From Orbicella franksi (lineage: Eukaryota), in contig OZ116703.1 of the NCBI GenBank assembly GCA_964199315.1, forward strand, positions 806,001-870,000: a stretch of DNA of 64,000 nt. The letters are read 5' to 3'. Below the pieces are notes generated by a model. The model was not told where the DNA came from and did not search any database. It saw only the letters and a program-made list of their open reading frames with translations. Each line of letters starts with the position of its first letter. Within the stretch, counting starts at the first letter, position 1. The translations under genes were made by a program, and so were the position numbers. Positions 1,463-46,591 of the stretch are shown here, piece after piece.

Positions 1463-4400
1463 CTAGACTTTCTTCGGTGGCTTCAATTTTGTCATAACAT
1501 CGTCTAGTGTTTCACCTGTGTAATATGCAAAGAAGACAAAATGATTTGAAAACGAGGTACACAATTTTTAACATTTCACGATTTATTCCCCAAGTGTTTT
1601 TTTTTTTTTGTATATTACAGTGTTCTTTTGCCAATATAAGCTAAAACTACTTAATCCTATAGATCCTATTCATAAATGGCTGCCAGTTTAAATTCTTTTG
1701 TATGCATTTGAATTAGCCCAACTAACCTCGTTTGACAATAAAAGTTATTTTGAATTATCAACTCAAAAACCAGGTTAGTTGGGCTAATTTTAATACCTAT
1801 AATATAATTTTTGATAGGTAGCCATTTATGAATAGGGTCTATCCTCTTCCATTCTTCATTAATTACTGAAGAAAATTTCAAAATTGTTTTTTCTTCTCTT
1901 TATCATTGTAACTAAGGTATTTCTCTAATGCCCTCTCTAACAAAATTCTATCTAATTCTACCTACTATGATCACAACATTTTTCTAAGTCATAAAGAGAG
2001 AGCTTTTATCCAATGGACGCGTCACTATTCAATGGATAGTTTATCCACTGTGAAACTATACCAGTATAATGGTTTCTCGTATTCAGGTGTTTTTTAACCG
2101 CAAAAAACAACAGGATCCAAGTTAAGTAAGGCCCCTTTGAAATGCCTTTTATGGTCTGGTAACCTTCTAAGCATAGCCCTGACACGCCACAACTGAGAGG
2201 TGTGTCACCTAAAGCACACTATGCAGCTTCTTGCAGTTGTTTTGGTGCTTTCTTTAATGATGCATATATGAAGTAAGAGCTAGTGTTTCATTATCTGCAA
2301 TGTTTGCTATTAGTATCAAAAAAGTAATCTAACATGCTTAGCATGAAAATGAAGGAAAATGACAAAAGGGAATTCTCGTGATAGCCTGATATAAAATTCC
2401 CTCAACGATCGCTAGAGCTGAAGGCTATTAGGAGAACGTTTATGTTGATATTGAGACATCTAATTAAATTAATTGTGCACAGTTTAGTTAAAGGACAATA
2501 AGGAACTTTGTTAAAAGATTCTCAATCTCTGAATTAATTTTGTTCCTTGAGCCTCGGCTTGTGGTCCTTTTGTTCCCTGTCATTAATTAAAAATACGTGA
2601 AATTACTTGGTTTAATTTACATTAGTGATAGTGAATTACAGGGTAAATTCACGTATTTATCGGAGTTTACAGTTTTATTAATTCCTCTTAAATGATCCCA
2701 TTAGGTTATTACTTCCTTCTTCTTTAGGGATCTTCATGGAGAAGCCACCGACGGGTGTATACGTTAAATGGAGAGTTACTGTTATGCGAGAGTTTATGTT
2801 AAGGACGTATATGTGAATATAACGTTACGTCATATGATGCATTGGTATTTTAAACGTTTTGAATGTATAATGATGATAAGCAAACATTCAAAAAATATAT
2901 GACGTGGAGAAACAAAGCAAGGACCAGGGTTAGTCAAAGTTGAAACTTTTAAAAGTTACAAGAGCACAATTGTCATTAAATGCGTTTGATCTGTTATTTA
3001 AATTTCTCCAACACATTCTGGACTAATGCTATGTTACGCAAACAGTTGAAAGAAAATTGTGCACCCATATTATCGTACATTTTTATTACAATGAAATAAT
3101 GACACTCCACTGTGTTTTTTTGCTTTCTTTTTGGGGGTTCTCCTAAAATCTCACAGAATATTGTCGTCCATTTATCTAACATCGTCATTATCATTATTTT
3201 ATTATCAATCGAATGAAACAACCGTAAATTTTCACTTGTTTATTTACATTTTCTCGTTAGTTGACACATGTCTGTTGTGTAACATAGTGAATTTACGAAA
3301 ATAACCCAGATAACAGAGACATGTCAGGTAACCATGGCAACGGAAAGTTCTCATTTTATACCTTTAGGTAGCCCTGATTTCTTTATGTTCTTGTCTGAAA
3401 GGGAACATGTCAAATGAACTCATGAAATAAATATCACTATTGGCAACTTTGGCTTCAAAATTGTCTTTATTTCCAAGACAGGATTCAAACACCTTATTCA
3501 TTAAGTATACGCGCGGCAAATACTTATTATGATTTCTTATCCTGAGTTCTTGAAACAATCTTCAAAGCATACTGAGTTATCTGTTAAACTTTTAGTCTTT
3601 AAAAAAATGAAAGAAATGACATTTTATGAGACTTAATAAATTAAATTTTATGCTTACCTTTCGTTATATAACCGACATTTTCTAATTTACTGAACTCTGA
3701 AAAAAGAACACAAAGATTTTCATGAGAAAAAAAAATCATTTCCCTTCCTCATGAGTATCTCTTTGAATTTTTTAACACTTTTCCCACAAAATAAATTTCA
3801 TAAAAAAAACTCTAAAAACATATTGCAATCTAATATTTACTTTTAACACATGCTTTGTTCTAACAACATTTTTGCTTGCTTAATTGCTTTCATACCATTG
3901 TTTTGTTTTAGTAAAGAGGTTTTCTTCGTTTTGGAAACATCTCTTCTTGTCATCTTTAATCCTGGTGTCTTTGACCTTCTATACACTGAAGTCGAAAAAA
4001 GTCACGTGGTTAAACGCAACTCCTCCTGGCGAGCATGCGCTATTATCTAACAACGTAAAGTCGTAAGGCCCTTCACTCTCAGTCAGTTTGTGCGATACAA
4101 AACCTCGCCTTCAAATTGAAGTATAAGTCTCAGAATAACTCAACTTAAGGCAGTAGAAAACAAAAAAGATATTATAATTGGATTGGTATACTACTGTAAC
4201 TACTGAAGATTTTTACCGAGTTTTAAATAAAATGAATAATGATGATGAGGAGGAGGAGGATGAGGATGATGATTTGACGATAATGAAGATGATGTAAACA
4301 AATGAGGAATAAGGATGGTTTAGATTAATTGAAGGCGACCGTGATGGATAAAGAGCAGCGAATTTGAAATATAATGCTATATGTTTTAAAATACAGCTTA

Positions 4401-7400
4401 CACGACGCAGCTCCTGTAGGTAACAAGCGTACAGTTCTAAATTCACAATCTTACCGTTCAGAATTCGCTGTGTTCTAGATGGCCTTTTAAAAAACTGGCC
4501 TCTATTCTTCAATACTCGATATCTATCGATTGTTCGAGGCCGTAGATATTGTCCTCCAATCCCATGAAACCTCAAGTCCCCTGCAGAGCAGAAAATGATT
4601 TGAATTTGGTTGATGGTTTTCGTAGACAACACAATAAGTCTAAACAGATGCTGATCATTGCAGGCAAGCTCCTATGTTCCAACGTTGCTTTGGAGTGGAG
4701 AGTAATGACATCACAGTTCAAAGTAATTTGTTTCTAGGTGGCATTATGTAACTTCAAATTTTATGACCAGAATTGTAACTGACTCACCTTCACTGGAAGG
4801 AAGAACATTTTGTTTCGCTATTGTCCTTGTTTCTAAATCAGGTGAGAGTTCTTCGTTTTCTTTTAATGAAAATGAAAACAGTTGTAGAGAAATAAGCCTC
4901 GTTAAGTAGCGTGTATTACTTAAGAAGCTTGCGCTTGAAAGGTACTTCAGCCCCTCCAAAGATAAATATATGTTTTTTAAGTTGTAGCAAGAGACGTTAT
5001 CCTGCCAAATGTTATTTCCTGTTTCCACAAAAGCAAAACTAAGGGCCTCTTATGGGTTTGGGGAGCAAGGGAACCAAATTATTCATTTCATGGCAGCAAG
5101 GGATAATGTTGGAGTATTTCATGGAACAAAGATCATCTTTGCTAGTAATGGGAACTTCCTGGGAAGATTTTAAGGAACAATTTAACTTATTCATAGGGAA
5201 AAGGGGGCAAAGTAAGGCAAAAAGGAACTTATATATCCCCGGGAGGCCACAAAAATATCCTCTGCTGTGTCTATAACTCAGTGGTTGCCTTAACAGTGAC
5301 ATCATTTAGGATTACATGGGCTGATTTTTGAAGTATTTTTGATAGACAACCTCCTTGTTGGACTCTTCCTTCGGCAACGCAGACAACAAGATTTTTAAAT
5401 AGCATCGCCTGACAAACATTAAACATACCAAGAGGTTGTTGCAATCCCCACGTATTTGACCTAAAGGGGCCACTGGTTTCCTCAGAAAAATATCTACTAC
5501 CTTCACTATCGGTAACTGTGGTAAAGAAATGAAAGAAATGTGCTAATTAGAGAACGCTTAACAGTGGGATAGCTATTTCTGATTAAAATCACTTTTTCTA
5601 TATTCGTAGGAAAATCTTCTTCTTTACTTCCGTAACCAGGAAATAAATTGTTCTTTCCCTCACAGTCATATTGTTTTCGATCCCGAATTCTTTATTTCCC
5701 CCTTCTTGTGACGTAACAAACAGAGAAATTAAGCATACCTTCAGAATCAGCCACCGTGCTCTTTTTATGTGATACTGGCACTTGAAAAAGAAAAGGAATT
5801 CAGCTTAATAACAAAATAGTGAACAAAGAAGGCACTACCTTCTCCTCCCGCCAAACCTACTCCCTTCCCCTTCCCTCACCCCACACCTTACACTCTTCAA
5901 AAGAAGAGATAGTCATTCTTAATACAGGATATGGGTATTATATGCGGCTTACCTTGCTTATGAGTGTAATAAATTGGTAATTCAGCTCCAACAGGCAAAG
6001 AGAAGAACACTGAAACATAAATTATCATAATCATAGTACATTAAACGTCAATGAAAATCATAAATTCGTGCGTATTGAGAATAAAAACAAACAAAAAATT
6101 CAAGACAGAAGATGACTTACTTTTTTGAATTAAATTTTTCTTTTTGTTTGGTTTTCTTCCTACAAATAAAAATAACTAGTTGTCGAGAAGAAAGTATTAA
6201 GCCCTCCAGGAAAGAATTTACAACGATAGCTGACACTCATGGTACAACATTGTCAGTTATTATCCGACTGCAGCGAATATCGTCCAAATAACAGTACAAA
6301 TATAGAGCGATATTGTACAGTTATTTGTACAGTAGCAAACCTGTTTGCCGGACTGGTCGGCGCGCGCACGCAAAACTGTCACACTCTTCCTCTTTCACTG
6401 ATAAATCTATTGACTACAGCAGTTGGATAATAAATCTCTTAATAGGTGTTTTGGTGTGTAGTATCGCAGTATATTTTCACTTGTTGTTTGTATTTTGACT
6501 CGTTCAAAATACGGCACAACACGTAAAAATACAGAGCGATACTACACACCAAAACATCTAATAAGATATATATATTTTCTTCCCCCAACCGTAACTACTG
6601 AAAGGCGAAGTAATTGTAACAAGCTAGCAATACCCTTATGCCTGACTGTCTCACAGCTTCAATCATAAAATATAACTCTGACAGTGAACTCACCTTGTGC
6701 TATGCTGGTACGTGGTCCAACATAGACATGTTTCACCACATGCACTCTTGGGTGCGGGTAAGGTACTGTACAAAAACAACAAAGTACCAAAGCGCGTCAA
6801 CTTCAACGACGATGTGAAACGTATTGTTATTATCTTCAACTTACTAGCTTGCTGTCGACGGTAACTCAGAGAAGTAATAGCTTTAATCAGTAAGTGTTAC
6901 TCGTTCCTTCATTCTATTAAGAATACAGCAAATGCGAAAACGTGCAACGCCCAAGTATTCCCAAATCCCATAACAGGTTTCAGCAGCAGCAAAAGCCCTT
7001 GAGTTCGTTTTCCTTGCTGTGTATTAAGGGACAGAGAACGGTTAAATTAAACACTTTGCAAATTACATAAACTTTCTATACTTACTTTCTCCTCTCTTCT
7101 TGTAAGCCGCAACATCTTCTGGTGGAGGGGTGGGGACAACTGTCACAGAGTAAAGCATAACTCAAATTTTCGAAAAAAATTAACATTATTATTCTGATTA
7201 GGAAAAAATTACTCTGATGAGCAAATGACGTTTGTAAACGTCGACTGTCAACATATGACCCATTGCCTTGTAAGCAAATCATTGCCTCATCGTAAAGGAT
7301 AGAAACTATTTTTTTTTCTTTATTTTTTGTAAACAGTTTAAAAATTTCATTTATTTCCCAAAAAAATTATCTGAAAAAAAGTTAACGTAAAACAAGATGT

Positions 7401-7678
7401 GTATTCTATGTAAGCCTACCTGATCTGTCCCTCCAAGTAGGCGAGTCTTTCCACGAGACCATTCCGTGCGCACCTTTGACGAACACTTGGACTACGAGTT
7501 AAATCACACAAATGCAAGTTTTAAGACGGAGAACATTTTCCTTTTATCCGCGTCAAAACCATTTCAACCAGAAGCAAATATGCTCCTGTTTCAGCCAGAT
7601 CTATTTATGCTTACCTGCATAACAAAACCCGCAGCTCCAAATCAAGAAGAAAGCAGCTACGTTAGAAATTCTAGCCAT
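1463..7678 (-). CDS. Gene A: orphan secreted basic protein (~289 aa) encoded by a micro-exon gene
   Basis: Manually assembled GT-AG exons: 7615-7678 (signal peptide MARISNVAAFFLIWSCGFCYA), 7420-7491, 7086-7139, 6694-6765, 6121-6159, 5953-5985, 5739-5780, 5501-5515, 4788-4859, 4455-4580, 3896-3985, 3658-3696, 3362-3394, 2713-2778 and terminal 1463-1515 (ETLDDVMTKLKPPKKV*). All 13 internal exons are multiples of 3, phase 1-1 and stop-free. Weaker symmetric candidates: 6845-6880, 3104-3142, 2164-2208. Confidence 0.72.
6439..6564. repeat. Foldback/inverted repeat in a gene A intron
   Basis: TTAATAGGTGTTTTGGTGTGTAGTATCGC versus GCGATACTACACACCAAAACATCTAATAA. Confidence 0.7.
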
Positions 7679-9616: not shown

Positions 9617-9722
9617 GTGCGTCTGTTCAGTAATAGATCACAGATGACGTAAAAATGTGGTAAGAACATCAGTGACATACTTGCCTGACGGCTCGTGTGC
9701 CACTTTTTTGTTCTTACCACAT
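9617..9722. repeat. Short interspersed palindromic repeat
   Basis: AAATGTGGTAAGAACA ... TGTTCTTACCACATTT inverted pair. Confidence 0.55.
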
Positions 9723-10053: not shown

Positions 10054-13000
10054 TCAAACATTAGCCAACAGGTCCTTGTAAATGATCTCCGCCATACGCT
10101 CATATCCTGCCGGTTTCATGTGCAGTCCCACTTCCCACATCATTTTTCGTTCGTCAATACTCAAAGAATACCTCGGAAATTTCACCGCCAGGTCGCAAAG
10201 GATAGTAAACTCATTCGATCTGGCATAATATCTTAACTTTTCATTGATGTATTTTCTTTCCAAATGCGTGTGAAGACAAGCTGGTCTTTTAGATTCTTCG
10301 CAGTCCATTTCAGGAATGGTGACTGCTACTGTTTTCGCGCCATGACGATGTGAAGTTATGTGGAGGTTGATGATGCGCTCGACCGCTGTGTCCCAGTCCT
10401 TTCTGTAAGGAGTTTTGCTGTTATGAGCGATGTCGTTTGTACCGGCCAGGATAATAACCCAGGAGTATTTAAATTTTGCTGTTGAAACAAAAGGTAAAGG
10501 TGTTAACTAAGTCCATGCACAGTGTAAGAAAGCTATTAGGTAAAACTCATTCATCATTCCTTATTATCACAAACAGGACTGACATTTACGAGCACAAGAA
10601 AAATGTGCAAAGCTTTAATTTTGCTTAAAATTTGTCTCTGCATTTTGTTGGAATTTTTAGAAATTTTTGGCTAATATTCTGAATTACGCGCACTAAATAA
10701 ATTGCTTACATGCGCAGGTATTTTTCCAATCCGCCTCAAGTCATCCTTTTACAGGTTTGGGTCCCGTATAAAAAGAACGGGGCGGCTCGTTGTACCTTTT
10801 AGGGGTTATGAAAGCGGTTTTGGCACCTCTCAGGTGTTCACCCTCAAAAGGTCCACAGTGGGAGATTTTGAGGTATCTTTTAGGGTATTGAGCCGAAAAA
10901 ATATAACAGGATATCATGATCTGACAACTAAATTTACGAGTAGAGGCTATTCAAAGTAATCGTCTTTATCGTGTTGTTCTAGAAATGGTACCTCTTAGGG
11001 GTGAAAAAAATTCAAGGCACGCCCACAAAACAAGATTTTGGTACTTTTGACGAGTTTTTTCGAAATTTCTCACGAGTGCTCCCGTCCTTTTTATATAGTA
11101 GTTCCCCAGGGATAAAACAACATCTAACACTATTTAAAATAACATATACCATCTCGCAGATGATTTTGAAGCCTAGTGGACATTTCGGCTGCTTCAGTGC
11201 CATCTTTCGCTATTGTTGTCAAGGTATAACACCTGTGAATGTCCTTGTTTAACAGATACTCCAGTGTCTGGGCGTAAGGGGTGTGGCTCTTGTCATCACC
11301 ATGGAAACCGTTTGTGAGGCTATCACCGAAGGCGAGAATGCGGAATACCTCCACTCCTGCAAGAGGTGTTCAAAAAGACAATTTACAAAACGGTCTGCGT
11401 AAAACGAAGACTGCGGACTGCGGACTGCGGACTGCAGACTGCAGGCTCCAGACTCTAGACCGGGGGTAAAATACAGACTGCAGACTACAGACTTTTTAGT
11501 GTATATCGCTATCGCGGTAATATTTCCATTATCGGGTGCTGACCGTAAACCGGATTATTCAGGCTAATCGTAGTGAGAGTCTGCACTCCGGTTAGCCTGA
11601 ATATCACTCAGGTTAGCCTGTTTACGGTTAGCTCTAAATGATGGAAATGGTAGCACGATTCAGTTAAAAAGTCTGCAGTCTGCAGTCTGCAGTCTGCATT
11701 TTACCCTTACACTCCCCGATTTACAAAAATTAATACACTGCGTGAATTTTCATCATGAACGATAAACTAAAGAAATCATAATCGAAAACATTACCTGTTC
11801 TAATTTCACAAATATACCCAGCCTTGGGCTCACTGCATGTTACCATGTGAACGCCATCTTTGGAAAGAGCTCCGCAGTTTTTGTCACCTAGCTCATCTTT
11901 CACGTGGACGTCACGTGTGTAAGGCACGTCATCGATCCATGTCCAGTTTTCGCTCTTCTTCTTCAGGCCGATATAAAAATACTTTTTTCTTCGTTTCGAC
12001 GACGAAATCTTGCGTTGTAGAAATCTTAACTCTTTATCTGTTTTAGGCATTGCTAGCAGACCGTTTTCATCGTTACACTTTAGGGGAAATTCCTCCCATT
12101 TTCCGTTTGATTTGGGTACAAATAAATAACAAAATTCCTCGAATGGCAACCATCCAGAAGGACATTTGTCCCTGTAGTCTATAAGAAAAAAATGCCGGAA
12201 ACGAATTAAATTAAATTGAAAGCTAAGGAAACACTTAACATAGTTAAAAAAAAAAAGAGTTTTCCTCGCAAGCCTTAAAATTTGGTAAATGGCTCTGAAA
12301 CTCTTGACCCGAATGGCCAAAGCCTTATCCACGTTGACGTTCTGTTTATTCCATGTGCTCTTTGGCAGAACTACCCTTCCAGTCATAACAAGGTGACACA
12401 AACAAAACATGAATTCACAATCAACTAGGGCCATCCTTTCTTTGTTGTCCTACAACGTCTATATCTGTTTTCGTTCAGAGACCTTGATACTAAAGCATAT
12501 TTTAGATCGTAGTCTCCTCGATTCTTATACATTGAAAGATAGAAATGTACCATCGAGGATTCGGGTCGCAAAACGTTTACAGTGTAGACATTGAAAACAA
12601 ATGTGTTACCTGCTTTTCCCATTCTCTCGCATTTCTTTACTGTCTCTTTGTCTTGAGCACCAAAGATACCTGATAAGAGTTAAGTACAGTTATTGAACAC
12701 AAGGGAACAAAACAAAACAGTACGAAAAAGTCAAAGACCCCTTTTAAACTTGGTAAATTGAGATCACCTGCATGGGTCTTGTTCTTTGTTGATGGGGAAA
12801 CCTTGTGTATCTTCTTAGCATGTTTCTGTTTACCATGGCTTTCGTGTAAAGGCAGATAATTATCTCCACTTCCAGACCCTTCCCCACTACCTGAAGACGA
12901 TGACTGGTACACGTCCTGAGAACGGAATTTCCAATGAGGAATAGTCGTTCTTTTGTAGCTACTTAACGTAGTTACCTTTCGAAAATCTCGCATTTTTGTT

Positions 13001-15314
13001 GGACTGAAATACGGCGAAGGACTTACCCTTTGAGATTCAAGACTGGCATTACCATTATAGTAACCCGCACCATAGTCTTCTTTGAATTTTTGTTCGTTGT
13101 ATATGTCGTGACTTTCTTCTTCAATGTGGGACATGGCTTTGTCCTTAAACGATAAAAGCGAGACTCCAGAAGTAGCTTTGTTTAATCTCATATCAGATTG
13201 GATGGCGAGTTTTAGAGCTGCGTTAAATTTTGCATCAGAACCAAGTCCACTCTCGTTAGAATCAGATTCATCCTCTGGATGCACGAAACCTTCCAGGCCT
13301 GAGTTAGTGGTGTCGCTACTACCTCCAAATTTCTCCGACACTGTATTATAAATTTCCCCTTCTTTTAAGGCGGTTGTTGCCCCATACTTCTTCCAGCGTG
13401 GAGTTGGCCTTACAGCTAATCCAGGTTTACTGTGTATAAGTTCTGGATTGGCCAAGAAAGCATTTTCAAAATAGCTCGATTTATCTGGGGCTCCTAGCAG
13501 AAACATGTCATTAGCGTTAAATCGCGGTTCGTTTTCCATCTTGGTATTGTATCCAATTCCTTCATTTCTTTCCTTAACAATGGAAGCTTCTTGTTTTACA
13601 TCTTTCAGAGGGTATTCTCCAGTCGACGCGCTTCCCTCGCTGTGCTGACCACCAGACTCAGATTTTAAACTATTCTTCAATGTTTTCAGGCTTATCGATT
13701 TAGCTTGATTTCGGAGAGCATCTAAATCATTTATATCGTCCGATATTCCCACCAACTGTGGTCGTATGAGCGAATTCAGGAATCTGTAGCGAGAGCGAAG
13801 TTTAAGCTTTGCCCTTTGGAGTTCATGTTCTCCTTGAGTTGGAAGATAATAACGCAAGGTTCTCTGTGTATCTCCGACACTTCGATCCGGGTATTTCAGT
13901 AGTTCGGTTAATCTCGAGTCATGAGACCTCGAGGAGTTCTCCAGAAGCGATGCAGCATTCACAATCTTTGTTCCCTCCACTGAAGCTGCACCGTACTTGT
14001 CCATATTTGAGGTCTCTTTTCCAAATTCGCGATTTCCAAAACCCCTACCTTCCGCACCGGGTTTCGGTCCTTCTAGTACAAGTGCTGGTAACGATGCTTC
14101 TTCGTTCTTGTTTGAACCGTTTCTGTCACCAGGTTTGTCCTTCATTATTTCAGGATGAACAAAATACTTATCAAGGATGTGCATCCGAGTTTTCCTGGCA
14201 CCAGTCTCTTTGATCCCTTCCTTTACATTCTTCTTAGTTTCAATTCTCCCGGTCGAATCTTTTAATCTCACGTTCGCGGATCGCACCTGCGCTGATCCAT
14301 TGCGTACAAAATGGATTCTTTGTTTCGCTCGGTATTCATCTTCAAATGAATTGTCTCTTATCAAGATGTTTTGTGTCCCTGAAGTAAATCTACGATCGCT
14401 GGAATCAGATGCAACAATCTGGTCCGTTGAAAGATTGCCATTTGTTGCCAATGCAGTTCCTAAACAAGCAAAACAAAAGCACTCTCTAAAAGACAATATG
14501 GACACCGTTGTGCCACATAAATAGGTTTGTGCAGTACAAGAATGTTGAATGTTTTCGGCCAGTTGTAGAGTGAACAGAATGCACTCTGTAATTTAACGGA
14601 ATGAAGTTTTAGGTTCTTTCACCTCTAAAACTGAGTACGCTCTCTATGACAGCCAAAATGTGAATAAACAGTTTAACATTAGGTTTTTTCTCAAGCAACA
14701 CAAACTATAAATTATATGATGAGATTGCCAGCTTTCACGTGTGGTGCTTCCAAGCTGAGTGGTTTCGGCATAACCTTTTGTTTATTGTGAATATTGTTCG
14801 AATATTGGGGTTTGTCTTGATGTGAAGAGAAGGGGTTTCTTTTTCAACTGTTTTCACACTGTAAAAAAGCGTGTAAAAATCTTTAAATGGTTGCTTGGTA
14901 TTTGTCCAATGAAAATGGCAATAAAAACAAAGTGTTAAAATCTCATTTTCAAATAAAAAGAGAACGTAGTTCAGTAAAAGCGCACTCAGTATTTGTGTGC
15001 GAGTAAGTCCGTATTACAAACTTCCATTAACTATTTCTGTCACTACACCGACTCTTGGGTAAATATCGCATGCACGTGCGCAAAGTTTTTCTTTGTATTC
15101 CACTAGCTTTATGTGGTAAATTCAATCAAATACTGATCTGATTACGTATGAGATATCAAGAACTTGGAAACAAACTAGAGTGTACTGTTTTAAAAACCTC
15201 AAACGTTCAACAATCTTAATTAGAAGAGGCTTGAAATTTCTACTAACCTGCCAAAGCACTCAGCAACAGGCAAGTCATAAGAGTACTCCTTAGCAACCAG
15301 ACGTCGTGGGCCAT
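10054..15314 (-). CDS. Gene B: secreted ~924-aa protein: signal peptide + long disordered Ser/Gly/acidic stalk + C-type lectin domain + SGNH/GDSL hydrolase
   Basis: Exons 15248-15314 (MAHDVWLLRSTLMTCLLLSALA), 12768-14459, 11795-12178 (CPSGW...FCYLF...YIGL...WTWID...C...C...YICE, CTLD pattern), 11150-11356 (ILAFGDSLT, block I) and 10054-10478 (ILAGTND block III, GLH block V). All junctions are phase 1 and in frame. Confidence 0.8.
10760..11108. mobile_element. MITE-like element in a gene B intron
   Basis: Degenerate terminal inverted repeats CCCGTATAAAAAGAACGGGGCGGCTCG versus CGAGTGCTCCCGTCCTTTTTATATAG. Confidence 0.45.
11393..11706. mobile_element. MITE-like element with (GACTGCA/G)n subterminal heptamer repeats
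   Basis: GGGTAAAATACAGACTGCAGAC versus GTCTGCAGTCTGCATTTTACCC, plus an upstream GACTGCG array. Confidence 0.6.
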
Positions 15315-26500: not shown

Positions 26501-28052
26501 TGTTGTTGCGATATGTTATAGATATAACGGTGGTTCAGCATTGTTCACTTTGACATAAATGAATCTTCCTTCTTCTACGCAAATATAATATGAACTTCCA
26601 ACTTCTAAGCTAAATTATAACATACCTCAACGTCTATCGGTGCCTGACAAACAGACAGATGTGATGTAGCGGGAAATTAACACAAGGCGGGAGTATACTT
26701 TTTTTCCGGTGGCTGATGTAACAAGTGCGCAATTGAAGTTATAAATTTAGAGCGGTTGGTGCAAAATTGATCTTCTACCTGTTAATCAGAATCGAAAACT
26801 TCGTAGAGTCAAGTCCTGCGCCACTTGCTTTTGGCAAGCGGTTTGTCACGGTAATTAGGTTGAAAAAAGCAACAACAACAGCGTTAATTTTGAGTCGAGT
26901 GGTTCTAAGTCCCGTTGTTATTGGGTTTCGGGTTACTTCTTTCGTTCACACTGTACTTTCCTCATAAGAGCCGCTATGTCAATAAGTGTTTCCATTTACA
27001 TGTAATGCGGACTGTCTTTTTAGCTTACTTTGAAATAATTCTTAACGTAGGTTTGTGTTGTTAATCGGTCAAATCAGACTAACTTAATAATCTTAAGGTG
27101 GAGGTTGAAGTCTCCCAAGCACTAAACGAATGAAGTGGCAATAAAGTCACAGTATTGATGCCGGATCAATTCTTTCAAGGAATAATTAGAAGAGAACAGA
27201 CATTCGATATACCCGGCCGGAATTTTCCAGTGTATTTCCTTTTCTGTTAAAAGTAAAATAGAGAATGGTGTCATCTGTCTGTATTCTTCTCTGACTCATT
27301 ACAAAATACCCGTCGACGGTAAAGAGAAAAGGAGTAAAGTGGGAAAGCAATAATGGAGGAGAAACACTGTTTCCCGGCTATGAAGTATTTGCCTTACAGG
27401 GACACACTTGTGCGTGGAAAGCACCTACACTGATCGACAATGGCAAAGCAGGTTGTGCAATCAGAAGAGATCACGGTTTTCGTGAAAGTGGCATCCAGTC
27501 CTTGGATTCTTATTCTAGCTCTTTTTATTCGGCGAGGAACTGGACTTTCAAAGTGGTTGCCAAGCAATATGTCCCGGCCCTAAACGCAGATAAGCTGCGC
27601 AGAAGGTGCGAAAAAGTCCTACGGGCTCGTATTTAGCCTAGTTTCTCGATCTTAGCTAATCTTTATTTATCTTTCTCGGTTATCAATTATTAACACAAAA
27701 ATAATAATAATAATCAGTAATAATAATACTTTGTTTATGTAGCACTGATTTCGTTTCTTAGCCGGCCTGCATGACCCTATTTCTCCCCCTTTTAATTCTA
27801 CTTTTTTATTAGAGGTAGGCATGTTAAACTGAAGCTACTCATCAAATAAGAATTAAATTCTATTACACACCTACTTGTAGAATTAATAAAAGTTTGTCCA
27901 TAATTTAGTTAAAGGAATTTTGAACGAAATCGTCTACAAAACACATCGTATTTTCCTTCTTTTACAAGAAACCAAGCATCTTCCGTTGTGGATACAATGC
28001 TCCAGTTTTCAAAAGTCAAAAAAAAAATTGGCTAATAGCTTATTACATTTAT

Positions 28053-29840
28053 CTATTGTCCTTGTTTTACAGGCAATAGCCCTATCTTTGTTTTAATTCT
28101 TTCGCTGTTAAGTTGGCGTTTGTTGTTGTTCTTGTCTCTGTTGTTGTATTTGCTGAGTTCCTTTTGCTGTTTTTCCACCATCCTTTTGTTTCCGAATCTG
28201 ACTTTCCTCACTTTCAAAACCAAGTTATCCAAGTTTGTTGTCATTCTGTTTCCATTCTTCAATTCCCCTATCATGTTACGTTTGTATGGTATGACAGGTT
28301 TGATGGCGTCCTCGTTGATTGTATTCAGCGGTATCTTAGGTCCCCTGGGTTGCGTTGTCAGCTGGGATGTGGGTTTCCCGCCAGGAATCAGACCGGAGAT
28401 CGCTTTTATTGCGTTCTCTCCAGCTTTTTTGAAAAATTCTATGATGTCTCTTGACTTTCGTTGTTGCGCTGAGGCTAGAAGAATAAAAAAATCATGAAAT
28501 AAGCTGCTAAAATAAGGGAATCAGAGCCCCCTCAAATTTTTGCAAATTTAGAGTGGTTCCAGACAGCTTCAGTATACGTCTTCAAGTTACGAAAAACTAT
28601 TTACCAATGTTTACCGCAATTTGGCAGTGAAAATGGGGACATCAACTTGTTTTCATTAATTGTCCATTAGTTTGAGGTTATATTGTAGAACTGACGATCA
28701 AAGAATATCATTATGAATCCATCAAAGTGCGAGATCATAGTGAAAAGTACTGAGGACTGTTATCAGTCATTCTATCGACATGAATAGGCGGCCATCATAC
28801 ACGATTACGATAAACCATTTTACAGTTGTGTGCTCAGTTACCTGGCCTATGAATGCAAGCGAGGCTGGAGGTAGCGCTGCTTTGATACAAATCTCTATGC
28901 TTTTCTTGTTAGCATTAGAACAATTTAATTTACACAACAAAAGCAGTGAGGTCTGTATCAAAACAAGGTCACCGCCAGCCTCACTGCCATTCAAAGGTCA
29001 AGTTACTGAGCAGACAACTGTAAATTAACAAAGTGACATCAGTTTTTAATGCGTCTGTCCTGTTATTGATCATGAATTTCGTCATAACATTGTCAAAGTA
29101 GTCTGCGGATCCACTCGGCTATCCACAACTACTTTGACAATGTTATGACGAAATTCATTGTCAATAACAGGACAGACGCATGAAAAACCGACGTCAATTT
29201 TTTTTTTACAATGACAAATGTTTCAAATTGTCCGCTCTCGCTCTTTGACGCATCGCATAAATAATAACTTCATGTGTCTGTCTGCATATTGACAATGAAA
29301 ATTAGCCAATGAGCGCGCAAGAATTTCTGCAGTTATCGTAAAATGGTTTATTGTAATTGTGTGTGAATCCTTCCTGGTCAAGAACTCCTACATAAGGACT
29401 ATATGCATGGCCAGACACCGCGTGACATGCGTATATCGACCCAATCAGGATCAAGCTTAAAGAACTAATTAGAAAACCGCGCCCTGCAACCTTTGATGAA
29501 TTAGCAGTTTACGAGTGTCACGTGTGAAAAACAAAATCACTCTATTGATTGTTTTGCAAGAAATAACAATGACTTCAAAGAGTCAAATTAGGAGATGAAA
29601 TTATTTTACGCTCAGCTTCATTGTCTTCTTGTCATGGCGAGCAGGTGTTACGGGTAACAACGACAAATGAACTGCCAAAGCTTCCAGGGCTCCCTTGTCA
29701 AAATATTATGAGTTCCAAAACAATTTGATGCGGTGTTTACCACGGCCCAAGCTACTAGACATAGCAAACAAAGAAAGAACAATTCTACCTTGAATATGTA
29801 GTTCCACTGACAGACCCATTAAGAGCAGAATCAGAAACAT
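28053..29840 (-). CDS. Gene F: orphan secreted ~157-aa basic precursor
   Basis: Exon 29789-29840 (MFLILLLMGLSVELHIQ, donor GTAGAA) splices in phase 1 to 28053-28474 (acceptor TTATTCTTCTAG; SAQQRKSRDIIEFFKKAG...KQGQ*). Confidence 0.62.
28819..29345. mobile_element. Two adjacent foldback/MITE-like elements in the gene F intron
   Basis: TTTACAGTTGTGTGCTCAG / CTGAGCAGACAACTGTAAA (28819-29024), then a long hairpin GCGTCTGTCCTGTTATTGA...TCAATAACAGGACAGACGC (~29050-29180). Confidence 0.6.
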
Positions 29841-31264
29841 AGCTGGCCACAAGAGGGAGAGGCTAGTAACAGGTCCAGCATGTGTTGTTCACTGTTGCAA
29901 GAATCGAAACACTTTGACTCATTGCGAGCAAATCTCTGCGCCTCCTTCAATTTCTTCAAAGGCCAAGCTAAGATTATCTCTTCTCAAAATAAACCATCTG
30001 GTAAAGTTCTTGAGTGTCGAGTGCAGTAAACATGTAAGGAAATAAGCTGCTTATTTACCTATTCACATGTAATGTGACGTCGACAGGTATAAATATTTGA
30101 CTACTGGCAAGTCACAACAGTTGTTTGCTAAGTTTAGCCAATTTAATTTTTTTTATTTAGTCCCTAAAGGGTACATAACATTGCGAGAGTTTTATAAGTT
30201 AAATTAGACATTAAATTCGAAAACTGTAATGTGACGTTAGAGAAACGAAGACTTAGAGCGGAGTGCAGATGACTTCTGGAGGTTTAAACAAACAAAATTC
30301 GAGATGAAGACCTTTTTAACCTGTCATTCGCCAACAAGAAAATGATACATGTCATGATCCCATATTGCACCGCTTGGCTGTCACTGAGACGTGCAGGATA
30401 TGAAGAGGCTAGCTACGATAGTAATCACTTCCTTGTTTTGTGTTAATGTCTGTCACAGGTTAGCAGCTGTAAGTAGGTTTTTGCTCTGATCTATTACGCA
30501 TATCTGGGTTATGGGTGTTCCACAATAATGGGAACAGAAGATCGTCAGATAGGGACTAATCTTCTGGTGTCCGGAATTGATCTATCTCAAACTCCCAACT
30601 TCCAAAATTTTTAAATCCATTTTAACCTCAGAAGAATCCCGAAAAACAGAGAGAAACTTTTAATTTTGCGATAAAATAGCTTTTATTACATAATCAGCTG
30701 CACGTTACTAATTATGGCTCATGCTTCTGTGGCGGATTACATAACTTTTTGCATGTTTTGATAGGGTTATAGTTTCTCGAAGAGTTAAAAAATAGATACT
30801 TACAATAAGCGATGATATAATTCATTGCATTGCAACTGAAGACTAGCTCGCCCGCAAAGGCTTGCAAGCATGCTGGCATATTAAATATAGAATGTAGATG
30901 AATACTCTTTGTGAAGTAAAATGTCCATACGTTACTATACTGGGTGTAGTGGGTCTGTAATCTTAGATTGCGCAGGCGCCTCCCGTCTGTCAGTTCTAGT
31001 CAGCCATTTAGCGAAAAATTTCAACGACAGTTGTAGTTGCAGTGACTCAAGATGAAAATTTTCACGCCAAAAAAACCCGCGTTTTCTGCGTTTGACGCTA
31101 GGTCCCGGCTGTCCTTCTCTGACAACAGGACCATGTCATTGCGTCTTGAATCAGCCCGAGCTATTGTTCGCCACTTTGGATCAACTCAAATCGGTTCGGC
31201 TGGCCAGACCTGACAAATGGTATGCGCCTTCTATTGCAAGTTTGAAGAATACTGTCAATTAAAG

Positions 31265-33944
31265 CTAAAACAGTTTGTTCAAAAACTGCTCCACTGCTCC
31301 TTCGGTGTGCTCTGAAGTCATCTTCTCAACATCACTTGGTTTAATCCCGAATTTCGCTCCAATAGCTTTGGCAAGAGACGCTGCCTTCTTCAGGGAAGAG
31401 TTGACCTCGTCAAACACCTGTCGAAGCCTGTTCTGAGTTTCACAATGAGCGAGTAGTGCTTGGGCCACTTTGAACTTTAATGTGTTAGTTTTCTGGATCT
31501 TTTCCTTTAAAATGTCAATCTTGCTCGCCTCAGGACTTTGCTGTTTGACCTGAGAACCTTTCTCTTGTTTTACCTCAGGCTTCTGAGGAGCATGCGCTGT
31601 TCTGACCACGTGATGTTCTGTGACCGCTAGAGCTTTCAAGATTTCTTTGGGTTTATCGTGTGCGACTGTTGAACTGTTTTGATTGATCACCTTCTTCGTT
31701 ACGTTAGGAGACATTGCTTTCAGTTGGAGTGACTCTGTATGTACTTGAGGTTTTTCTTTGGTTATCTTGATTTCATGTGTGGGCAGATCTTTATTTTCAG
31801 CTGTTTGAAGCTTTGCTGTTTTTATGGTTTCCACACTAGCGGGGCTTTTCAAGTGACTGGCGTTAACTTGCACACCTTGCGCTGGCTTATCTTTCGTATT
31901 TAAAGCTTTTTCTTTTGAGGCCTTAGTCAGCGCTGCTTGTTCAGCAGCTGCTGGTTTCAAACTAACTTTCTTTTCTGCTTCTTTTTTTGACAAGTCTTGA
32001 ACAGGAGATTTTGGGTTCTCAATAGCCTTTTTCGGAGAAGTAACGTCTTTAATATGAGGCGCGTCTTTCGACGTTTCCGCACTCTTTCCAGCATCGTTCT
32101 TCTTGATCTTATCTTCCACTTTAACAATATCTTTACTCTTTATCTTCTTTGGTAGATTCTTATGCGTGTCTTTCTGAGGTGTTGCATGCTGTTCTATTGC
32201 TGTCTTGTGACTTTGCCCCTTCTTGAAGTGAGCAGTCTCAATCTGCGTCTGTTTCGCATCATTCTTTGCTGCTTTCTGGCTCTTTAAGGAACTGTGCGGC
32301 GCTGATGGCTTTTGAGATTTCTCTGTAGTTTTATCTTTTACTATTTTCTCTGTTGCTTTATCCTTCCCTGTCATCTTTGTCGTTTCATCTTTGACCATTT
32401 TTTCTGCTTCTTTGTCTTTAACTACTTCATGCGACGAAACAGTTTGCTTGGAATTCTTTTGATGTGATTTAGCTTGTTTCTGCAACAGTCTAATTTTCTT
32501 TGGATGTGTGGAAGTTTTGGTTTTTTTGGGTGCAAGGTCCTTTAACACTTTTACAATCTTCTCATCTTTATGCGTCTTCACCTTCTCTTTAGCAATCTCT
32601 TTCTCAGCCTGTTTTCTTCGAATGTTGTCCATGACTTTCCAGTATTTGTCCAAACCTTTAAGATGGAAGTATTTACGCAAAACACTTTGAGGCATCTTCG
32701 AAAGTATTTCGAGAACACGCTTGTGCTTCTTTGTCAACTTTCTGCGAACCCCATGTTTCGCGTTCGAAGAACGCGGAAGATCTTTCCCTCCTGCTTCTTG
32801 TGGCTTGGCGATGTCAGATTTCTTGCTGCCTGTCTCGATGGTTGCCTGCTCGCTTCCAGCCATGAATTCCACAAGCGCTCTGTATGCTTTCTCGGGGACG
32901 CCAGTTTGTTCTTTGTGATCCTTTGCTCTGGCGTCACTTCCAATCAAGGCTTTGACCAGGTTTTCTTTACTTATCTCATCACTGTTTGCTTTACGCTTTG
33001 GTTTTTTATCCTGTTGCTTGGAAATTCGTTTAGCTTTCCAAGCTTTTGTCTTGTCTTGTACCTTTTTCTTTGTATTTCGTTTCTTGACATGTTTGTCTGC
33101 CTGTAACCCATGTTTCTTTGACAAATGATGTGACTCTTTACCCACCCGTACGTCTTTTCTCTTGATCTCAGGAGAATCCTTCTTTTTCTTGTGATTATCT
33201 TCATGTTTACCGGCATTTCTTCGGACGATTAATCGACCTATATCCGATACCAAGTTCGTATCCGTTCGCACATCTTCGTCGTCCTCATCGTCAGATCTTC
33301 GGGACCGGTGATGCGCTTGTTCGTCTTCCGTCACCGAAATTCCGCTCTCTTGAATCAGCCATTGGTTGATCTCGTTAGCGAGTATTTTCGATTCCCTTTC
33401 GGCTTGCTCTATAAGTTGTTCAAGTCTTCGCGTTGCATCAAGACTGCCTAGAAAATAAAAAATGCGTTGTTAAACACCTTTCAATGATTTGAAATATCAC
33501 CTGATTTTGGCTTATGTGACGTCTAGCACAGTATGGTGTTTGGGTCCCTCCTAAATTTCAAATACCAGCGTAATACTCAATTGGATGCTTTCTTTCCTCC
33601 ATCGCATTTACATCACGTGCACGTCACATGTTAACATCACGAGAGAAAGATTGTGAAAAGCACGGGAAAACAGCGCGCGAGCCTGGTGACGATTGGATTA
33701 ATTTTTTCCTTGGTCGATTCAAAATAAAGACAACAGGTTTGATTTGTAGACTGAACATGAAGCACGAGTTTGTAGATTGCGTTTATAGATTATCGATCCC
33801 GACAAACGCAAACCTAAAAACTATTTTCGATAGTGAACGTTAAAACAGTCTAAACTATTCATGCTTACCTTCAGTCAGTTGTAGAGCGGCTCCGACAAAC
33901 AAGACTAAGGTCAAGTGGAAAACTGAATTGTAGCTTGGCGTCAT
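31265..33944 (-). CDS. Gene D: orphan secreted ~752-aa lysine-rich protein with helical C-terminus
   Basis: Exon 33869-33944 (MTPSYNSVFHLTLVLFVGAALQLTE, donor GTAAGC) splices in phase 1 to exon 31265-33447, which contains the 689-aa ORF. RSRR furin-type site near the N-terminus. Confidence 0.82.
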
Positions 33945-36900
33945 GATCTTGCATGCTGCGATAACAAACAAACCAGAAAAGATAAACATGGCACTGATCG
34001 ATGGTTACTGTGGTCAGTAATAAATTCACCGCATGTTTACTCGCTATTCACCGCGTGTTATTTTGGGTTAGTAATTACCCCAGTTCTCAATTACGAGTCC
34101 TGCTTTAACTTGTGTGAGCTACAACGTAGATTGATCGATCACAAGTCCATAAAAACTATCCGATTTTTCGCCGATGTCATTACTTTCTATATGTGTGTAT
34201 ACTTTCACCGAAAGGTGACCTGCGATCAGGCGTTCTTTTGCTTTTTTTTCGGGGGAATAAAAGAACGCCTGCTCGCAAGCGGTAGTTACACCCCGTTGAA
34301 CTCTTCTGCGCAAGGTGAAATGTGAGGAAAGATGGGGAGGCTGGAGTTCCTATTCTCTTACTTGGCATCGTTACCCTTGCCGGTTAATGTCCTCTCTTAA
34401 CGTCATGAGCAATCCATTACCCAGTCCAAAGGGAACAAAATTGGCCACACCCACCATATTTAAAAATTTCAATATATACAAAATTGGCCGCACCCACCAT
34501 ATTTAAATATTTCAATGTATCAATTCTCTCTATGAATAAAAAAACTTATTAGACTGGAAATGTATAAGAAACTAACGCACCGATGTAGCAACATTTGATT
34601 TCTATCTATCAAGATGATAGATTGAATAAATATTATGAACACTGTTTACACTGGATAACGAAACTACTGTAACGGATTGTATCCAAATTTTGCTGGGTTT
34701 TTTAAGTATATAATATTTTGTTTTGGTTAGCTGCCACGATCGATAGCCAGTGCTGAAAATGTTAATCGATGTGCTTGAATGAAACGAAGAGAATATAATA
34801 ACTTCAATTCATAAGTAAATATTTAGTCATTAGGTTTTGTTAAGTGGGCGGTCAAGTATCCGCGCGGGGCGGAAAACACCCGTCGTAAGAGGTTTAACAC
34901 AGCTAAGTATTATTCTCAAAATACCTTTTGTAACAAGAAATCCAAACCATACCCATGCCCGCGCAACTAAATTAATGCCGTTCTCTGGTTAAACAAAAAC
35001 TCATGTTTTAGACTAGTTTAAGAATCGTAAATTACACAACCGAGGAACCGCGGGAGGCTCTCGATTTTAGACAACAAAAACTTCAACCAGCAAACTTTCA
35101 TAGTCACAGTCATCATAAATTTTCGTTAACACTAACTCTACATGGCAAGACACTTTGCGCAATGTGGTCCGGTGCGAGAAGTCCCATTTGAAAAAATTTC
35201 AAGCCTTGTACAACTGCTACATAAGCTTACCTCCGAGACCAGCCCTTCACTCTTTGTGCTATCACCTTTCGTACACGCACTTATGGAATAGACTTTTTCT
35301 TTCACATACCGGCAGAAATCGCAACCCCGGAACGACCCACTCTTCTACGAACAAAAGCCTTTCGATTTTTAGAGGGACTGCTGCAGTTATTGACGGAATT
35401 GTACACCAAATTTCAGGTGGAAAATCTCCTTGTTCTGCAAGATACAGTCAGGGTACCTGTTAAACGCGTGTTTAACTATTCATGTAGTCAGTGTGACATG
35501 TTTAGTGACCCGGGCTGTGTTTGTGTGTTCACTTGCCGATTGTGGATGTGATGTGTGTGTTCCATTGTTTGGTTGTGTCAAGGCCGGTCAAGGGCCCCAT
35601 TTATAGAAAACAAATGCATGCAGTTCAGCGATGATTAAGCACATTGAATGGACAAAACCTAAATTTCAATCAGGTTTTTTTTCACAATCAGGGTACTAAT
35701 AGAACGGACAGCTTTTCATAACTCGCTTGCTAACTCAGCGCATCACGTTCTTTGCAAACTAAACCCCTTATTTATTATGATTGTTATGTTGTGTTAGTGA
35801 CCGACCAGTTCCTCCCAGTTTCCTTTTTTTTTTATTTAGCTTTATCACTAATGTTCTGTGGATATAGGAAGTATAACCATCGTTTTAGACAGACAACGCC
35901 GTTAATGCTCTCGGTGTCTTTTTACGACTACTCAAATGGTTTTCCCTCACAAATCGAACTGGTGGAATAATTTGCAATATTTTCCAAGCAAACTCAGTGA
36001 ATTGTATCTGTTCAACACTTTTGTTAGTAAAGTTATCTTATGAAAACACTTGAATTTTAAGGAGAGTTTAATTTTAGTCAAAAGAAAATTTGCCTAATTT
36101 TATTTCCGTAATTTCCGTCATTGCTCGTGGTGTGAGTAGCCGAAGAGTAACAAGCGGGAAATCTGGTCGCGTTAAACTGGGGTTGAGTCGTAAGGGTTTT
36201 TCTTAGGTGTCCGCCGTACGAGGGTGGTTGCTTATTACTTTCAAATATATTTAGCTGAGTACAAACCAAAGCATTCTCAACTCAAATTAAATTAAACTTG
36301 ATATTACGAGTGCTAATAATGGGATTGGAGACATTGCAAATGTAACTTGTTATAATGGGTTATTTTTACAAATTCACCTTCATGGGAGGGGGGGAGGAAT
36401 TTTTTCAACAGGAGCTGCCCACTGTAACGTTAAACGTTGAACGTGACGCTAAGACGCATGCAATTTAAGTGAATACTGATTACCATTTCCACATTCGCTT
36501 TCAGATGAGGAGAGTTACTCTCGGAGCCCCTTCCTAGTTAACTATTGAAGCTAGTAGTCGTAGTAATGGGGTCAGTGACAGTAAAAAGTAACATTCCTAA
36601 ACACAAGATATCTATTTCTCTCCACAGGTCTCTGCTCCAGTAAACCGTCTTTAAAACCGAGAGTAGGTTAACTGAATAAGATATATAGTTTAGCCCGAAA
36701 TGTTACGGAGTTGTCTGCTTCTATGTTTCTCCACCCACTTTGAATGATTATTGTGGGGAAAAGGAAGTCAACTGACATATCAGCCTGTGCCGGAAGATTA
36801 ACAATAACCATGCAATCATGTTTAATATAACTTTCAACGTCATGTTATAACAGTCCACATTAACGTAATGTAAAAATAGATTTTGAAGCGTTTCATTGAC

Positions 36901-36968
36901 GATTGTCTCCTAGTAATCTTCTCCTGACTTAGTTTTTTTCTCTTGCAATTGGGGAAAACTTCGCCAAT

Positions 36969-38225
36969 TTACTTCTTAAAATGTACGTAATCGAGCCCCA
37001 TGTGTTCACCAGCATGTACCAAGGCGACTTCTGCTTTCCGTATAACATCTTTGACGTTATTACTACCAGTTCGTGCTTTCTTTCTCAGCTTGGCAACCTT
37101 ATCAGCCAGCGCGACATATTGCTTAGCAATTTTCAGCTTCTTTCGCGCCTTGTTCAATTTCCACTTTATTTCTTCCACTTTCGTTTTAAATTTCGGGACT
37201 TTCTCTAGCAACACGGCGGATGTCGACTCTATCTCTTTCCCAGGTTCCGCACCAGAGGCCTCGGCCTGTTGAAGCTCTGTGAGAAGTGAGCGATTGCTGT
37301 CACGTGGTTCGGGCTTTTTCTCTGAAAAGTTAAAAAGTAAATCAGAGATGGCTTAGCTAAATTACTTTCTTTCAAAATTTATTTAGGTCATTTTGCATGG
37401 CAAGGAAAATGTTCAAGCCACATGCTAGTCGATGCAAGCTGGTGAGAGGAGGCCATGCAGGAGCCAATGGCTGTTGCAAATTCTTGCAGTCCCTCGCGGA
37501 CTTCCGATCTAAATGTCCGCGTTGAAGGTTTTCAGGTAAATCTGTTGCGTCATGCTACTTAGCAACACTACTACTGAACACTGCGGGCTCGCATCAAATT
37601 CTGACAAGATTCTTTCCGAAATAAGAACTTAGCGTTTTCCTGGGGAATACAAACTCAGTTTTATGATAGCTATAGCTCCCTCTCGATCACTTTCCCACAT
37701 GGAGTTGTTAATCTTAAATTTGGACAGGGAGACTAACATTTGTCGCAAACGGGTCTGATTCAATGTCAATCCTTCTTTTTAAGAAAGCAAGTTGAGATTG
37801 AAGAAAAGTCGACAACGACAGGTGTTACATTGAAGCGGCCGTCGACAACCAGTTCTGCTGGATTCAGTCATTAAACCAAGACAGAACGTTCGGGTTATAA
37901 TATCGCCTTTGTTTGTCGTGGAAAAAAGTTCTGGGAAAACTTAAGTAAATTTCAAATCGATGTTTAGAAAAATCCCTCACTAGATCGCACTTTTCTCCAC
38001 TTGATCTATCACTTGAGAGTCATAAACACAGTAGACATTATATAGGTTACTAACAAAAGCCGAAATGTGTTCAGTCATTGGATAACAAAAGGAAACTAAA
38101 GCAACAAATCAACGGGTCGTAACATGAAAGCGCGCTCTGGTTTCACTCCTACCTTCCTTCTTTGCGGGTAATGCCGCTATCACTACTCCGAGGAAAATTA
38201 GAACTACTAGGCTGTCCAACCTCAT
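36969..38225 (-). CDS. Gene E: orphan secreted ~141-aa precursor (signal, acidic pro-region, very cationic helix)
   Basis: Exon 38153-38225 (MRLDSLVVLIFLGVVIAALPAKKE, donor GTAGGA) splices in phase 1 to 36969-37321 (acceptor TTAACTTTTCAG). Confidence 0.72.

Positions 38226-46560: not shown

Positions 46561-46591
<31 letters not shown>

Follow-up and report, generated by a model that had tools for sequence, protein, structure and literature searches.

A stretch of 64,000 nucleotides (nt) from the coral Orbicella franksi (contig OZ116703.1, positions 806,001 to 870,000), hereafter the window, carries on its minus strand a row of genes whose products open with a signal-like peptide. These genes are called A to F; in the direction of transcription their order is E, D, F, C, B and A. 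They are separate genes, and the row is neither one gene nor a tandem array of detectable paralogues. The reading that we favour, at slightly better than even confidence, takes the row as a conserved set of neighbouring but independent genes. One after another they would have been added beside an old cnidarian gene, and their products, secreted polyelectrolytes that are free of cysteine and helical or disordered, would probably be processed at basic sites and work outside the cell. A lineage-restricted neighbourhood of secreted-protein genes is solid; that it is an analogue of the vertebrate SCPP cluster is not demonstrated. The window DNA is 98.6-99.2% identical to a contig of Orbicella faveolata (GCA_002042975.1, locus L003).

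A row of separate genes for secreted proteins

First exons were collected by scanning the minus strand for an ATG-initiated hydrophobic peptide followed by a GT donor. The scan recovered five of the six, and the sixth was read directly from the sequence. An initial annotation of this DNA had described signal-peptide exons of 52-76 nt ending in phase 1 for A to F, and all six are present. Each encodes a hydrophobic signal-like peptide only, and each ends in phase 1 at a consensus donor (the slash marks the exon end):

38225-38153, minus strand: E exon 1, 73 nt, donor G/GTAGGA
33944-33869, minus strand: D exon 1, 76 nt, donor G/GTAAGC
29840-29789, minus strand: F exon 1, 52 nt, donor G/GTAGAA
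23534-23462, minus strand: C exon 1, 73 nt, donor G/GTAGGT
15314-15248, minus strand: B exon 1, 67 nt, donor G/GTTAGT
7678-7615, minus strand: A exon 1, 64 nt, donor G/GTAAGC

Downstream of each signal exon, a pyrimidine-rich AG acceptor in matching phase leads into an open frame. Joining the exons gives continuous reading frames of 141 amino acids (aa) for E, 752 aa for D, 157 aa for F and 966 aa for C, each closed by a single terminal stop. The coral Desmophyllum pertusum has annotated genes of 140, 725, 116 and 1007 aa in the same order, and the 116-aa and 1007-aa calls begin exactly at the first exons of F and C. The ratio of nonsynonymous to synonymous substitution (dN/dS), calculated by the Nei-Gojobori method between the window genes and their relatives, was 0.03-0.48 across all exons tested (E, D, F, C and B), as expected under purifying selection. 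From their frames, their junction or orthologue support and their low dN/dS, we therefore conclude that E, D, F, C and B are five real coding genes. The initial annotation had counted six complete genes and a partial one, H. These five were borne out, A was checked at exon 1 only, and H, which had been given without coordinates, was not located. The head-to-tail orientation on the minus strand is as described, and no further recognisable gene was found within the row.

In E, D, F and C, the N-terminal segment is the sole hydrophobic one and the remainder is strongly hydrophilic. Mature E, F and C have no cysteine and mature D has one; the isoelectric points are 9.9 (E), 9.9 (D), 10.7 (F) and 6.6 (C). 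The Lys-rich, acidic and P/Q/Y-rich compositions noted earlier were all observed, with 19% Lys in D and, in C, an acidic head, a P/Q/Y/A-rich middle and a basic tail. So were the R-x-x-R and other basic sites (RSRR in D, RRRRR and RWKR in C). The only Pfam domains in the row are Lectin_C and GDSL/SGNH, both in B. The products had been called orphans, which is right as far as Pfam is silent outside B and not right for D and E, both annotated in RefSeq, E having relatives across Cnidaria. Altogether, the products are soluble, cysteine-free or cysteine-poor and strongly hydrophilic, combining long amphipathic helices with disordered charged or P/Q-rich stretches.

Genes D and F are transcribed separately

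RNA reads and contigs were mapped over window positions 28001-34000, which hold D and F. The RNA runs containing window sequence are labelled coral metatranscriptomes. We used raw polyA reads (X24), the contigs of two other RNA runs (X1 and X6) and a polyA sample with the same species label as X24 (X22). The gene models are as follows:

30139..33961, minus strand: gene D (752 aa), from an RNA joint and RefSeq; coding part of exon 1 33944-33869, coding part of exon 2 33447-31265, 3' untranslated region to about 30139
28053..30024, minus strand: gene F (157 aa), from an RNA joint and conservation; coding part of exon 1 29840-29789, exon 2 28474-28053

RNA joins 33869 to 33447 in D and 29789 to 28474 in F, in both cases in X24 reads and in X1 and X6 contigs and with GT..AG ends on the minus strand, and the predicted introns were matched exactly. 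Depth is zero within the D intron and low within the F intron outside a repeat at 28800-29400. The D polyA signal AATAAA lies at about 30158 and the transcript end, taken from an RNA contig, about 20 nt further at 30139, while the 5' untranslated region of F extends to at least 30024. The end of the D transcript and the start of F are at most 115 nt apart, and therefore the F promoter must overlap the D terminator. We considered that D and F might be one gene with alternative ends and rejected this, as no RNA joint between D exons and F exons was seen. The repeat in the F intron (28800-29400) reached word depths in the thousands in the X1 and X6 RNA contigs, with many loose ends, and was also covered in X22, where D and F have no reads; it is a highly transcribed dispersed repeat.

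The O. faveolata RefSeq protein P0060 spans the D junction, and the D models there (XP_020625216 and XP_020625161) are named 'trichohyalin-like'. We found 59 full-length relatives of D in robust and complex stony corals, down to 40% identity in Porites, and a dN/dS of 0.23-0.26. Conservation is concentrated in islands, namely RSRR followed by an acidic run, ENLVKALI, KLTKKHKRVL..LRKYFHLKGLDKYWKVMDNI and the near-invariant last 85 residues. AlphaFold predicts the C-terminal domain as one long helix (pLDDT >90) followed by short helices. Gene-context look-ups for the Oculina protein P0016 and for P0003 returned no record.

Trichohyalin and the other S100 fused-type proteins are intracellular and start with an S100 EF-hand domain. 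D resembles them in its long, highly charged, helix-prone, low-complexity sequence but differs in having a signal peptide and no S100/EF-hand domain. We rejected this assignment, since the signal peptide is present, D has no Pfam domain and the Pfam field is empty in 59/59 orthologues; the RefSeq name mirrors its composition only. The older O. faveolata assembly contains a 4.85-kb tandem duplication holding D (L003:5201-12725 against window 31383-36231), with two RefSeq models, and the window has one copy. Either the extra copy is an artefact (of haplotype or assembly), or the copy number differs.

F is conserved at 77% in a related coral (L001) and at 72% in Desmophyllum, with a dN/dS of 0.28-0.48. 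In the stretch of the O. faveolata assembly examined, the F position has no gene model.

Gene C has a predicted six-exon structure and a duplicated helical module

Splice sites of C were predicted from sequence and frame, giving intron phases of 1, 1, 1, 0 and 1:

18052..23534, minus strand: gene C (966 aa, 6 exons)
23534-23462, minus strand: exon 1, signal exon
23035-22823, minus strand: exon 2, acidic, Tyr-rich
21743-21153, minus strand: exon 3, helical module 1 and P/Q/Y/M-rich part
20795-19984, minus strand: exon 4, PAQPVA repeats (18-nt tandem repeat)
19480-19279, minus strand: exon 5, P/Y-rich
19061-18052, minus strand: exon 6, helical module 2 and basic tail

Each of exons 2-6 has a conserved counterpart in two more distant corals (L006 and L007), and exons 3, 4 and 6 together with the exon 5 region were also found on the Logan contig L005. 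This contig was considered as a spliced C transcript and rejected, being genomic and collinear with the introns. RNA runs carry a fraction of 0.36-0.54 of the words of the 5.5-kb C gene, against an exon share of 0.53 in the model. The dN/dS was lowest in exon 6 (0.05-0.08), 0.08-0.17 in exons 2 and 3, and 0.23-0.40 in exon 4. Exon 6 has 29 relatives in stony corals, down to 34% identity, with several invariant blocks, and its module is homologous to that of exon 3 (E 3e-9). The basic sites RRRRR and KRWKRS are conserved. In L001 an EGF exon is called between F and C; nothing in the window corresponds to it.

Gene E belongs to a cnidarian-wide family

36969..38225, minus strand: gene E (141 aa), sequence model with RefSeq match; exon 1 38225-38153, exon 2 37321-36969

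RefSeq has a 141-aa product at the E position in O. faveolata, equal in length to our model and named 'uncharacterized'. We found 26 orthologues, including Nematostella LOC5511498. A search of 1.84 billion representative proteins with a hidden Markov model (HMM) of the family gave 20 matches, with E values down to 6.6e-61, all of them E-like. Members occur in sea anemones (two Nematostella genes, LOC5511498 and LOC116618504, Exaiptasia AIPGENE19132 and Actinostola), in octocorals (Dendronephthya, Xenia LOC124446093 and Paramuricea) and in the scyphozoan Sanderia.

E aligns with the family over its full length, with 24 invariant columns, and carries its signature, a signal peptide followed by a domain of about 85 aa with P-x-F...E-[IL]-K-W-K-L-N-x-A-[RK]...A-K...[KR]-x-[IL]-I-x-K-[AT]-E...L-V-H-A-G-E-x-M-G-L-D-Y-x-H. 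The last part, LVHAGExMGLDYxH, is a second invariant block kept from scyphozoans to corals. The dN/dS is 0.05-0.12, and AlphaFold (AF2) predicts one long confident helix. Judged from its sequence, E is a small, basic, cysteine-free protein, predicted to be helical and secreted, of an unnamed cnidarian-wide family. Many E relatives end in KR or RRKR followed by an acidic tail. Some relatives of the sea-anemone type (P0219-P0222, from Actinostola and unnamed Logan proteins) are 235-333 aa long, with an acidic EAKANEPEV repeat region N-terminal to the E domain and RRKRS plus an acidic tail at the end; this layout suggests a processed precursor.

The stretch KWKLNKARKKLKIAK of E resembles the start of a cecropin, and E was considered as a cecropin on this ground. 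The likeness, that of a basic amphipathic helix starting K-W-K-L, is limited to K-W-K-L; E differs in its domain of about 85 residues, which is too long and too conserved and has the second invariant block. There was no Pfam cecropin match for E or for Nematostella P0187 (E up to 0.1), and the assignment was rejected.

The row is a mosaic of ages

On the side of E, the row is followed by genes on the plus strand:

41095..42195, plus strand: rhodopsin-type G-protein-coupled receptor (GPCR), Pfam 7tm_1 1.8e-34, head-to-head with E
45060-47609, plus strand: TELO2, a single-exon open reading frame

The SBF-like gene named by the initial annotation comes next after TELO2; the neighbouring gene in Nematostella has DENN/SBF2/myotubularin domains.

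The core order E-D-F-C and its orientation are kept in O. faveolata, L001 and Desmophyllum. On a 1.06-Mb contig of a distant coral, where D is 44% identical, we observed TELO2-GPCR-E-D-...-C in one orientation. The order TELO2-GPCR-E-D-(F)-C is conserved in four other corals, and in Oculina D and E have adjacent locus tags. The Nematostella locus reads SBF-TELO2-GPCR-E, with GPCR and E head-to-head, followed by a tyrosine phosphatase gene; no match to D, F or C was found there. The SBF-TELO2-GPCR-E arrangement also occurs in Desmophyllum, L001 and ctg29608. The divergent GPCR and E are 2.9 kb apart in the window (38225-41095) and 0.7 kb apart in Nematostella (L004:8116-11154). The E gene of Xenia, which lies within an intron of a pyridine-nucleotide oxidoreductase gene, and the second Nematostella paralogue of E both have no GPCR neighbour. 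The synteny beside TELO2-SBF that the initial annotation had proposed to follow is real for the core E-D-F-C across distant stony corals and comes down to E alone at the Nematostella locus.

D and C were found only in stony corals. At the other end of the row, C is immediately upstream of B in L014, a relative at 86% DNA identity, and the 10 kb downstream of C in L006 and L007 contain no B. Given the differing phylogenetic spread and synteny depth of E, of D, F and C, and of B, the row is a mosaic of ages, with E ancient, D, F and C coral-wide, and B (possibly also A) recent neighbours. E would be the oldest member and would have had its place next to GPCR-TELO2-SBF before sea anemones and stony corals diverged. 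The stony-coral lineage would have gained D, F and C downstream of E and kept them under purifying selection; the lectin-esterase gene B, perhaps with A, would be a later arrival or one confined to the Orbicella lineage.

No kinship is detectable among E, D, F and C

The initial annotation had taken the common gene architecture as the feature uniting the row and duplication as the way in which it was built. Neither claim was upheld. BLASTP of D against C and of E against D gave E values of 0.1-0.45, not significant, and hhalign of the orthologue profiles for these comparisons gave about 1% probability, also when the E profile was widened to cnidarians. The 20 matches of the E-family HMM include nothing like D or C. 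A helical module common to C, D and E was considered and rejected, as only the C exon 3/exon 6 pair was significant and BLASTP, hhalign and the E HMM were otherwise null. Duplication was thus seen inside C, and no homology was detected among E, D, F and C. A short motif is common to the D N-terminus (RRLEQLIEQ...NEINQWL, at about 33380-33300) and C exon 6 (RDLEDLEND...NEINIWL, at about 18560-18470), with an hhalign E of 4e-4 over 10 columns at 34% probability and a BLASTP E of 1.2. This NEIN-x-WL could be a linear motif that both proteins carry, or exon shuffling could have left it there.

As for the architecture, animal secreted proteins in general have more phase-1 introns than expected at the signal-peptide cleavage site (Nielsen and Wernersson 2006, PMC1626468, citing Tordai and Patthy and Vibranovski et al.). 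Phase-1 signal exons being generic, the 'one gene architecture' is not a family signature. The same two-exon phase-1 layout is common to E-family genes at the unrelated Nematostella and Xenia loci.

SCPP genes arose from SPARCL1 by tandem duplication, have all their introns in phase 0 and encode S-x-E motifs phosphorylated by FAM20C. Cnidarian genes could not in any event be SPARCL1 descendants. The coral row resembles the SCPP cluster in being a row of dissimilar disordered secreted proteins, acidic or P/Q-rich, with the signal peptide on its own small exon, and C has an amelogenin-like P/Q/Y-rich composition. However, the coral members are mostly basic, and BLASTP, hhalign and HMM searches gave no sign of a common ancestor for E, D, F and C. 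All six genes have the separate signal exon, ending in phase 1, and the C introns are in phases 1, 1, 1, 0 and 1. The motif S-x-[ED] is not enriched, with counts of 12 in D, 9 in C and 0 in E against shuffled expectations of 7.8, 11.8 and 0.9. The SCPP analogy drawn by the initial annotation is therefore a descriptive likeness only.

Expression and regulation

D, F and C are transcribed in adult colonies. Many small adult-colony RNA runs contain D and many contain C; six contain both. D and F had similar depth in X1, X6 and X24, and both were at zero in X22, of which about 10 million reads were scanned. Shared regulation is proposed because D ends at most 115 nt before F and the two have similar RNA depth; D and F at least may be co-regulated. 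The common location of the genes probably comes from local gene birth and shared regulation, and not from one ancestral gene.

What the row may make

In the reading that we favour, the proteins would enter the secretory pathway by their signal peptides and then be trimmed at conserved basic sites, namely RSRR in D, RRRRR and KRWKRS in C, and KR with an acidic tail in E relatives. They would finally act as extracellular polyelectrolyte or coiled-coil components, as content of secretory granules, mucus or matrix, and not as enzymes or disulfide-folded ligands. The conservation of these sites in D, C and E relatives suggests processing by convertases. Several points weigh against this reading. 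Cleavage by a proprotein convertase is presumed from motifs. The whole region is syntenically stable, TELO2-GPCR-E having stayed together since the split from anemones, and conserved order alone is therefore no proof of a functional link. Remote homology of fast-evolving disordered proteins can escape detection, and common descent of D, F and C is possible; likewise, the word-based protein search may miss divergent relatives of D or C outside stony corals. The joint absence of D and F from X22, for which there is no housekeeping control gene, gives at most a hint that the two are regulated together. Comparing the 500 nt before each ATG with random-segment controls gave no promoter k-mer common to the six genes above background. 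A literature search on every accession and locus tag obtained for these proteins found no paper, and no Orbicella cell atlas with usable identifiers turned up.

The initial annotation had read the 38-kb row A-F as one SCPP-like locus, produced by tandem duplication and exon shuffling, in which one cell type makes one material from oppositely charged, co-assembling products. Six co-oriented secreted-protein genes with nothing recognisable between them are in accordance with this, as are the symmetric 1-1 exons in C and B, the module duplication inside C, the NEINxWL motif in D and C exon 6, the basic D, F and E beside a C with acidic blocks, and the similar depth of D and F with the loss of both in one sample. 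Among language-model neighbours, D is placed near the MEPE/osteoregulin cluster at 0.72, which, like the 0.69 obtained for E, is under the noise level stated for the tool. We nevertheless consider this explanation rather improbable, because phase-1 signal exons are generic, no paralogy is detectable among E, D, F and C, the members differ in age and synteny depth, the introns are not all in phase 0, S-x-E is not enriched, and B is an ordinary lectin-hydrolase. A narrower idea, to which we give slightly less weight, is that E, D, F and C are co-expressed cargo of one secretory cell type, assembling through charge and coiled coils into a stony-coral material, for example at the tissue-skeleton interface. 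If so, the locus would be an independently arisen cnidarian functional counterpart of the SCPP cluster, located beside an older cnidarian gene. The polyelectrolyte adhesives of sandcastle worms and mussels, oppositely charged proteins that are secreted together and coacervate, offer a parallel, the row likewise having Lys-rich basic proteins encoded beside a protein with acidic and Tyr-rich blocks. There is no sequence relation to them, and D does not have a phosphoserine-type or DOPA-type composition; by this analogy, charge-driven co-assembly of the row products is plausible.

Signalling is another candidate function, in which E, and possibly fragments of D and C, would be prohormone- or granin-like cargo of regulated secretion, with E as a candidate ligand of the neighbouring GPCR. 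The head-to-head E-GPCR pair is kept from stony corals to Nematostella, E is strongly constrained (by the dN/dS and the 24 invariant positions given above), many of its relatives have the prohormone-like KR/RRKR and acidic tail, and RSRR in D and KRWKRS in C are conserved. Granins and prohormone cargo share with the coral proteins a signal peptide, few or no cysteines, a hydrophilic charged sequence and conserved di- or multibasic sites; granins, however, are acidic, whereas the coral D, E and F are strongly basic, with no sequence or Pfam match. We hold this function to be unlikely. No GPCR lies next to the second Nematostella paralogue or the Xenia gene, and the E-GPCR adjacency is inside a generally conserved microsynteny block. 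A cysteine-free helix of about 85 residues would be an unusual ligand for a GPCR, the length and abundance of D and C are more in keeping with structural proteins, and no amidation or repeated peptide motifs were seen. Still a little less probable is host defence, with the cationic amphipathic E, D and F as antimicrobial or microbe-binding components of mucus and B as their glycan-recognising partner. The high positive charge and amphipathic helices, the cecropin-like start of KWKLNKARKKLKIAK, the C-type lectin and esterase of B and the expression in adult colony tissue would fit this. In contrast, E has no Pfam cecropin match and is conserved far beyond the usual level of immune effectors, D and C have long conserved islands that are not amphipathic, and B is not syntenic in distant corals.

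Stony corals have many lineage-restricted secreted proteins, on which the biology of their skeleton, mucus and adhesion depends. The locus provides four well-supported, conserved and wholly uncharacterised ones. Among them, E defines a small family of anthozoans and one scyphozoan, and its place beside the GPCR has been kept since the split of anemones and stony corals. If the products co-localise, the row offers a tractable case of a new extracellular material made from newly born genes; if they do not, it cleanly illustrates that kinship cannot be concluded from a 'shared architecture' of secreted genes.

Genes A and B

1463..7678, minus strand: gene A as proposed by the initial annotation
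10054..15314, minus strand: gene B, from Pfam and conservation, phase-1 junctions predicted; signal exon 15314-15248
14459-12768, minus strand: B stalk exon, 564 aa, disordered
12178-11795, minus strand: B C-type lectin exon, Pfam Lectin_C PF00059
within 11356-11133 and 10478-10054, minus strand: B SGNH/GDSL hydrolase exons, the exact junction between the two left approximate

Among the putative micro-exons of A, no meaningful direct repeats were found. B contains a 651-codon open frame. The C-type lectin domain (CTLD) and SGNH domain that the initial annotation had recognised in B both exceed their Pfam cut-offs, the lectin at 48.6 bits against 22.6 (PF00059, E 1.6e-12) and the hydrolase at 35.0 bits against 32.9 (PF13472, Lipase_GDSL_2, E 2.6e-8), the latter with GDSLTNG and AGTND in its exons. 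B with its signal exon is conserved in the JGI coral contigs L013-L015. The dN/dS was 0.33-0.38 in the stalk, and 0.03-0.09 in the CTLD and first SGNH exon. At the place of B downstream of C, L006 and L007 have retroelement fragments (rve and RVT_1; L006:15000-19200 and L007:16780-19456). The B intron between the lectin and hydrolase exons carries heptamer microsatellites, (AGACTGC)n and (AGTCTGC)n, at 11408-11454 and 11670-11698, about 220 nt apart.

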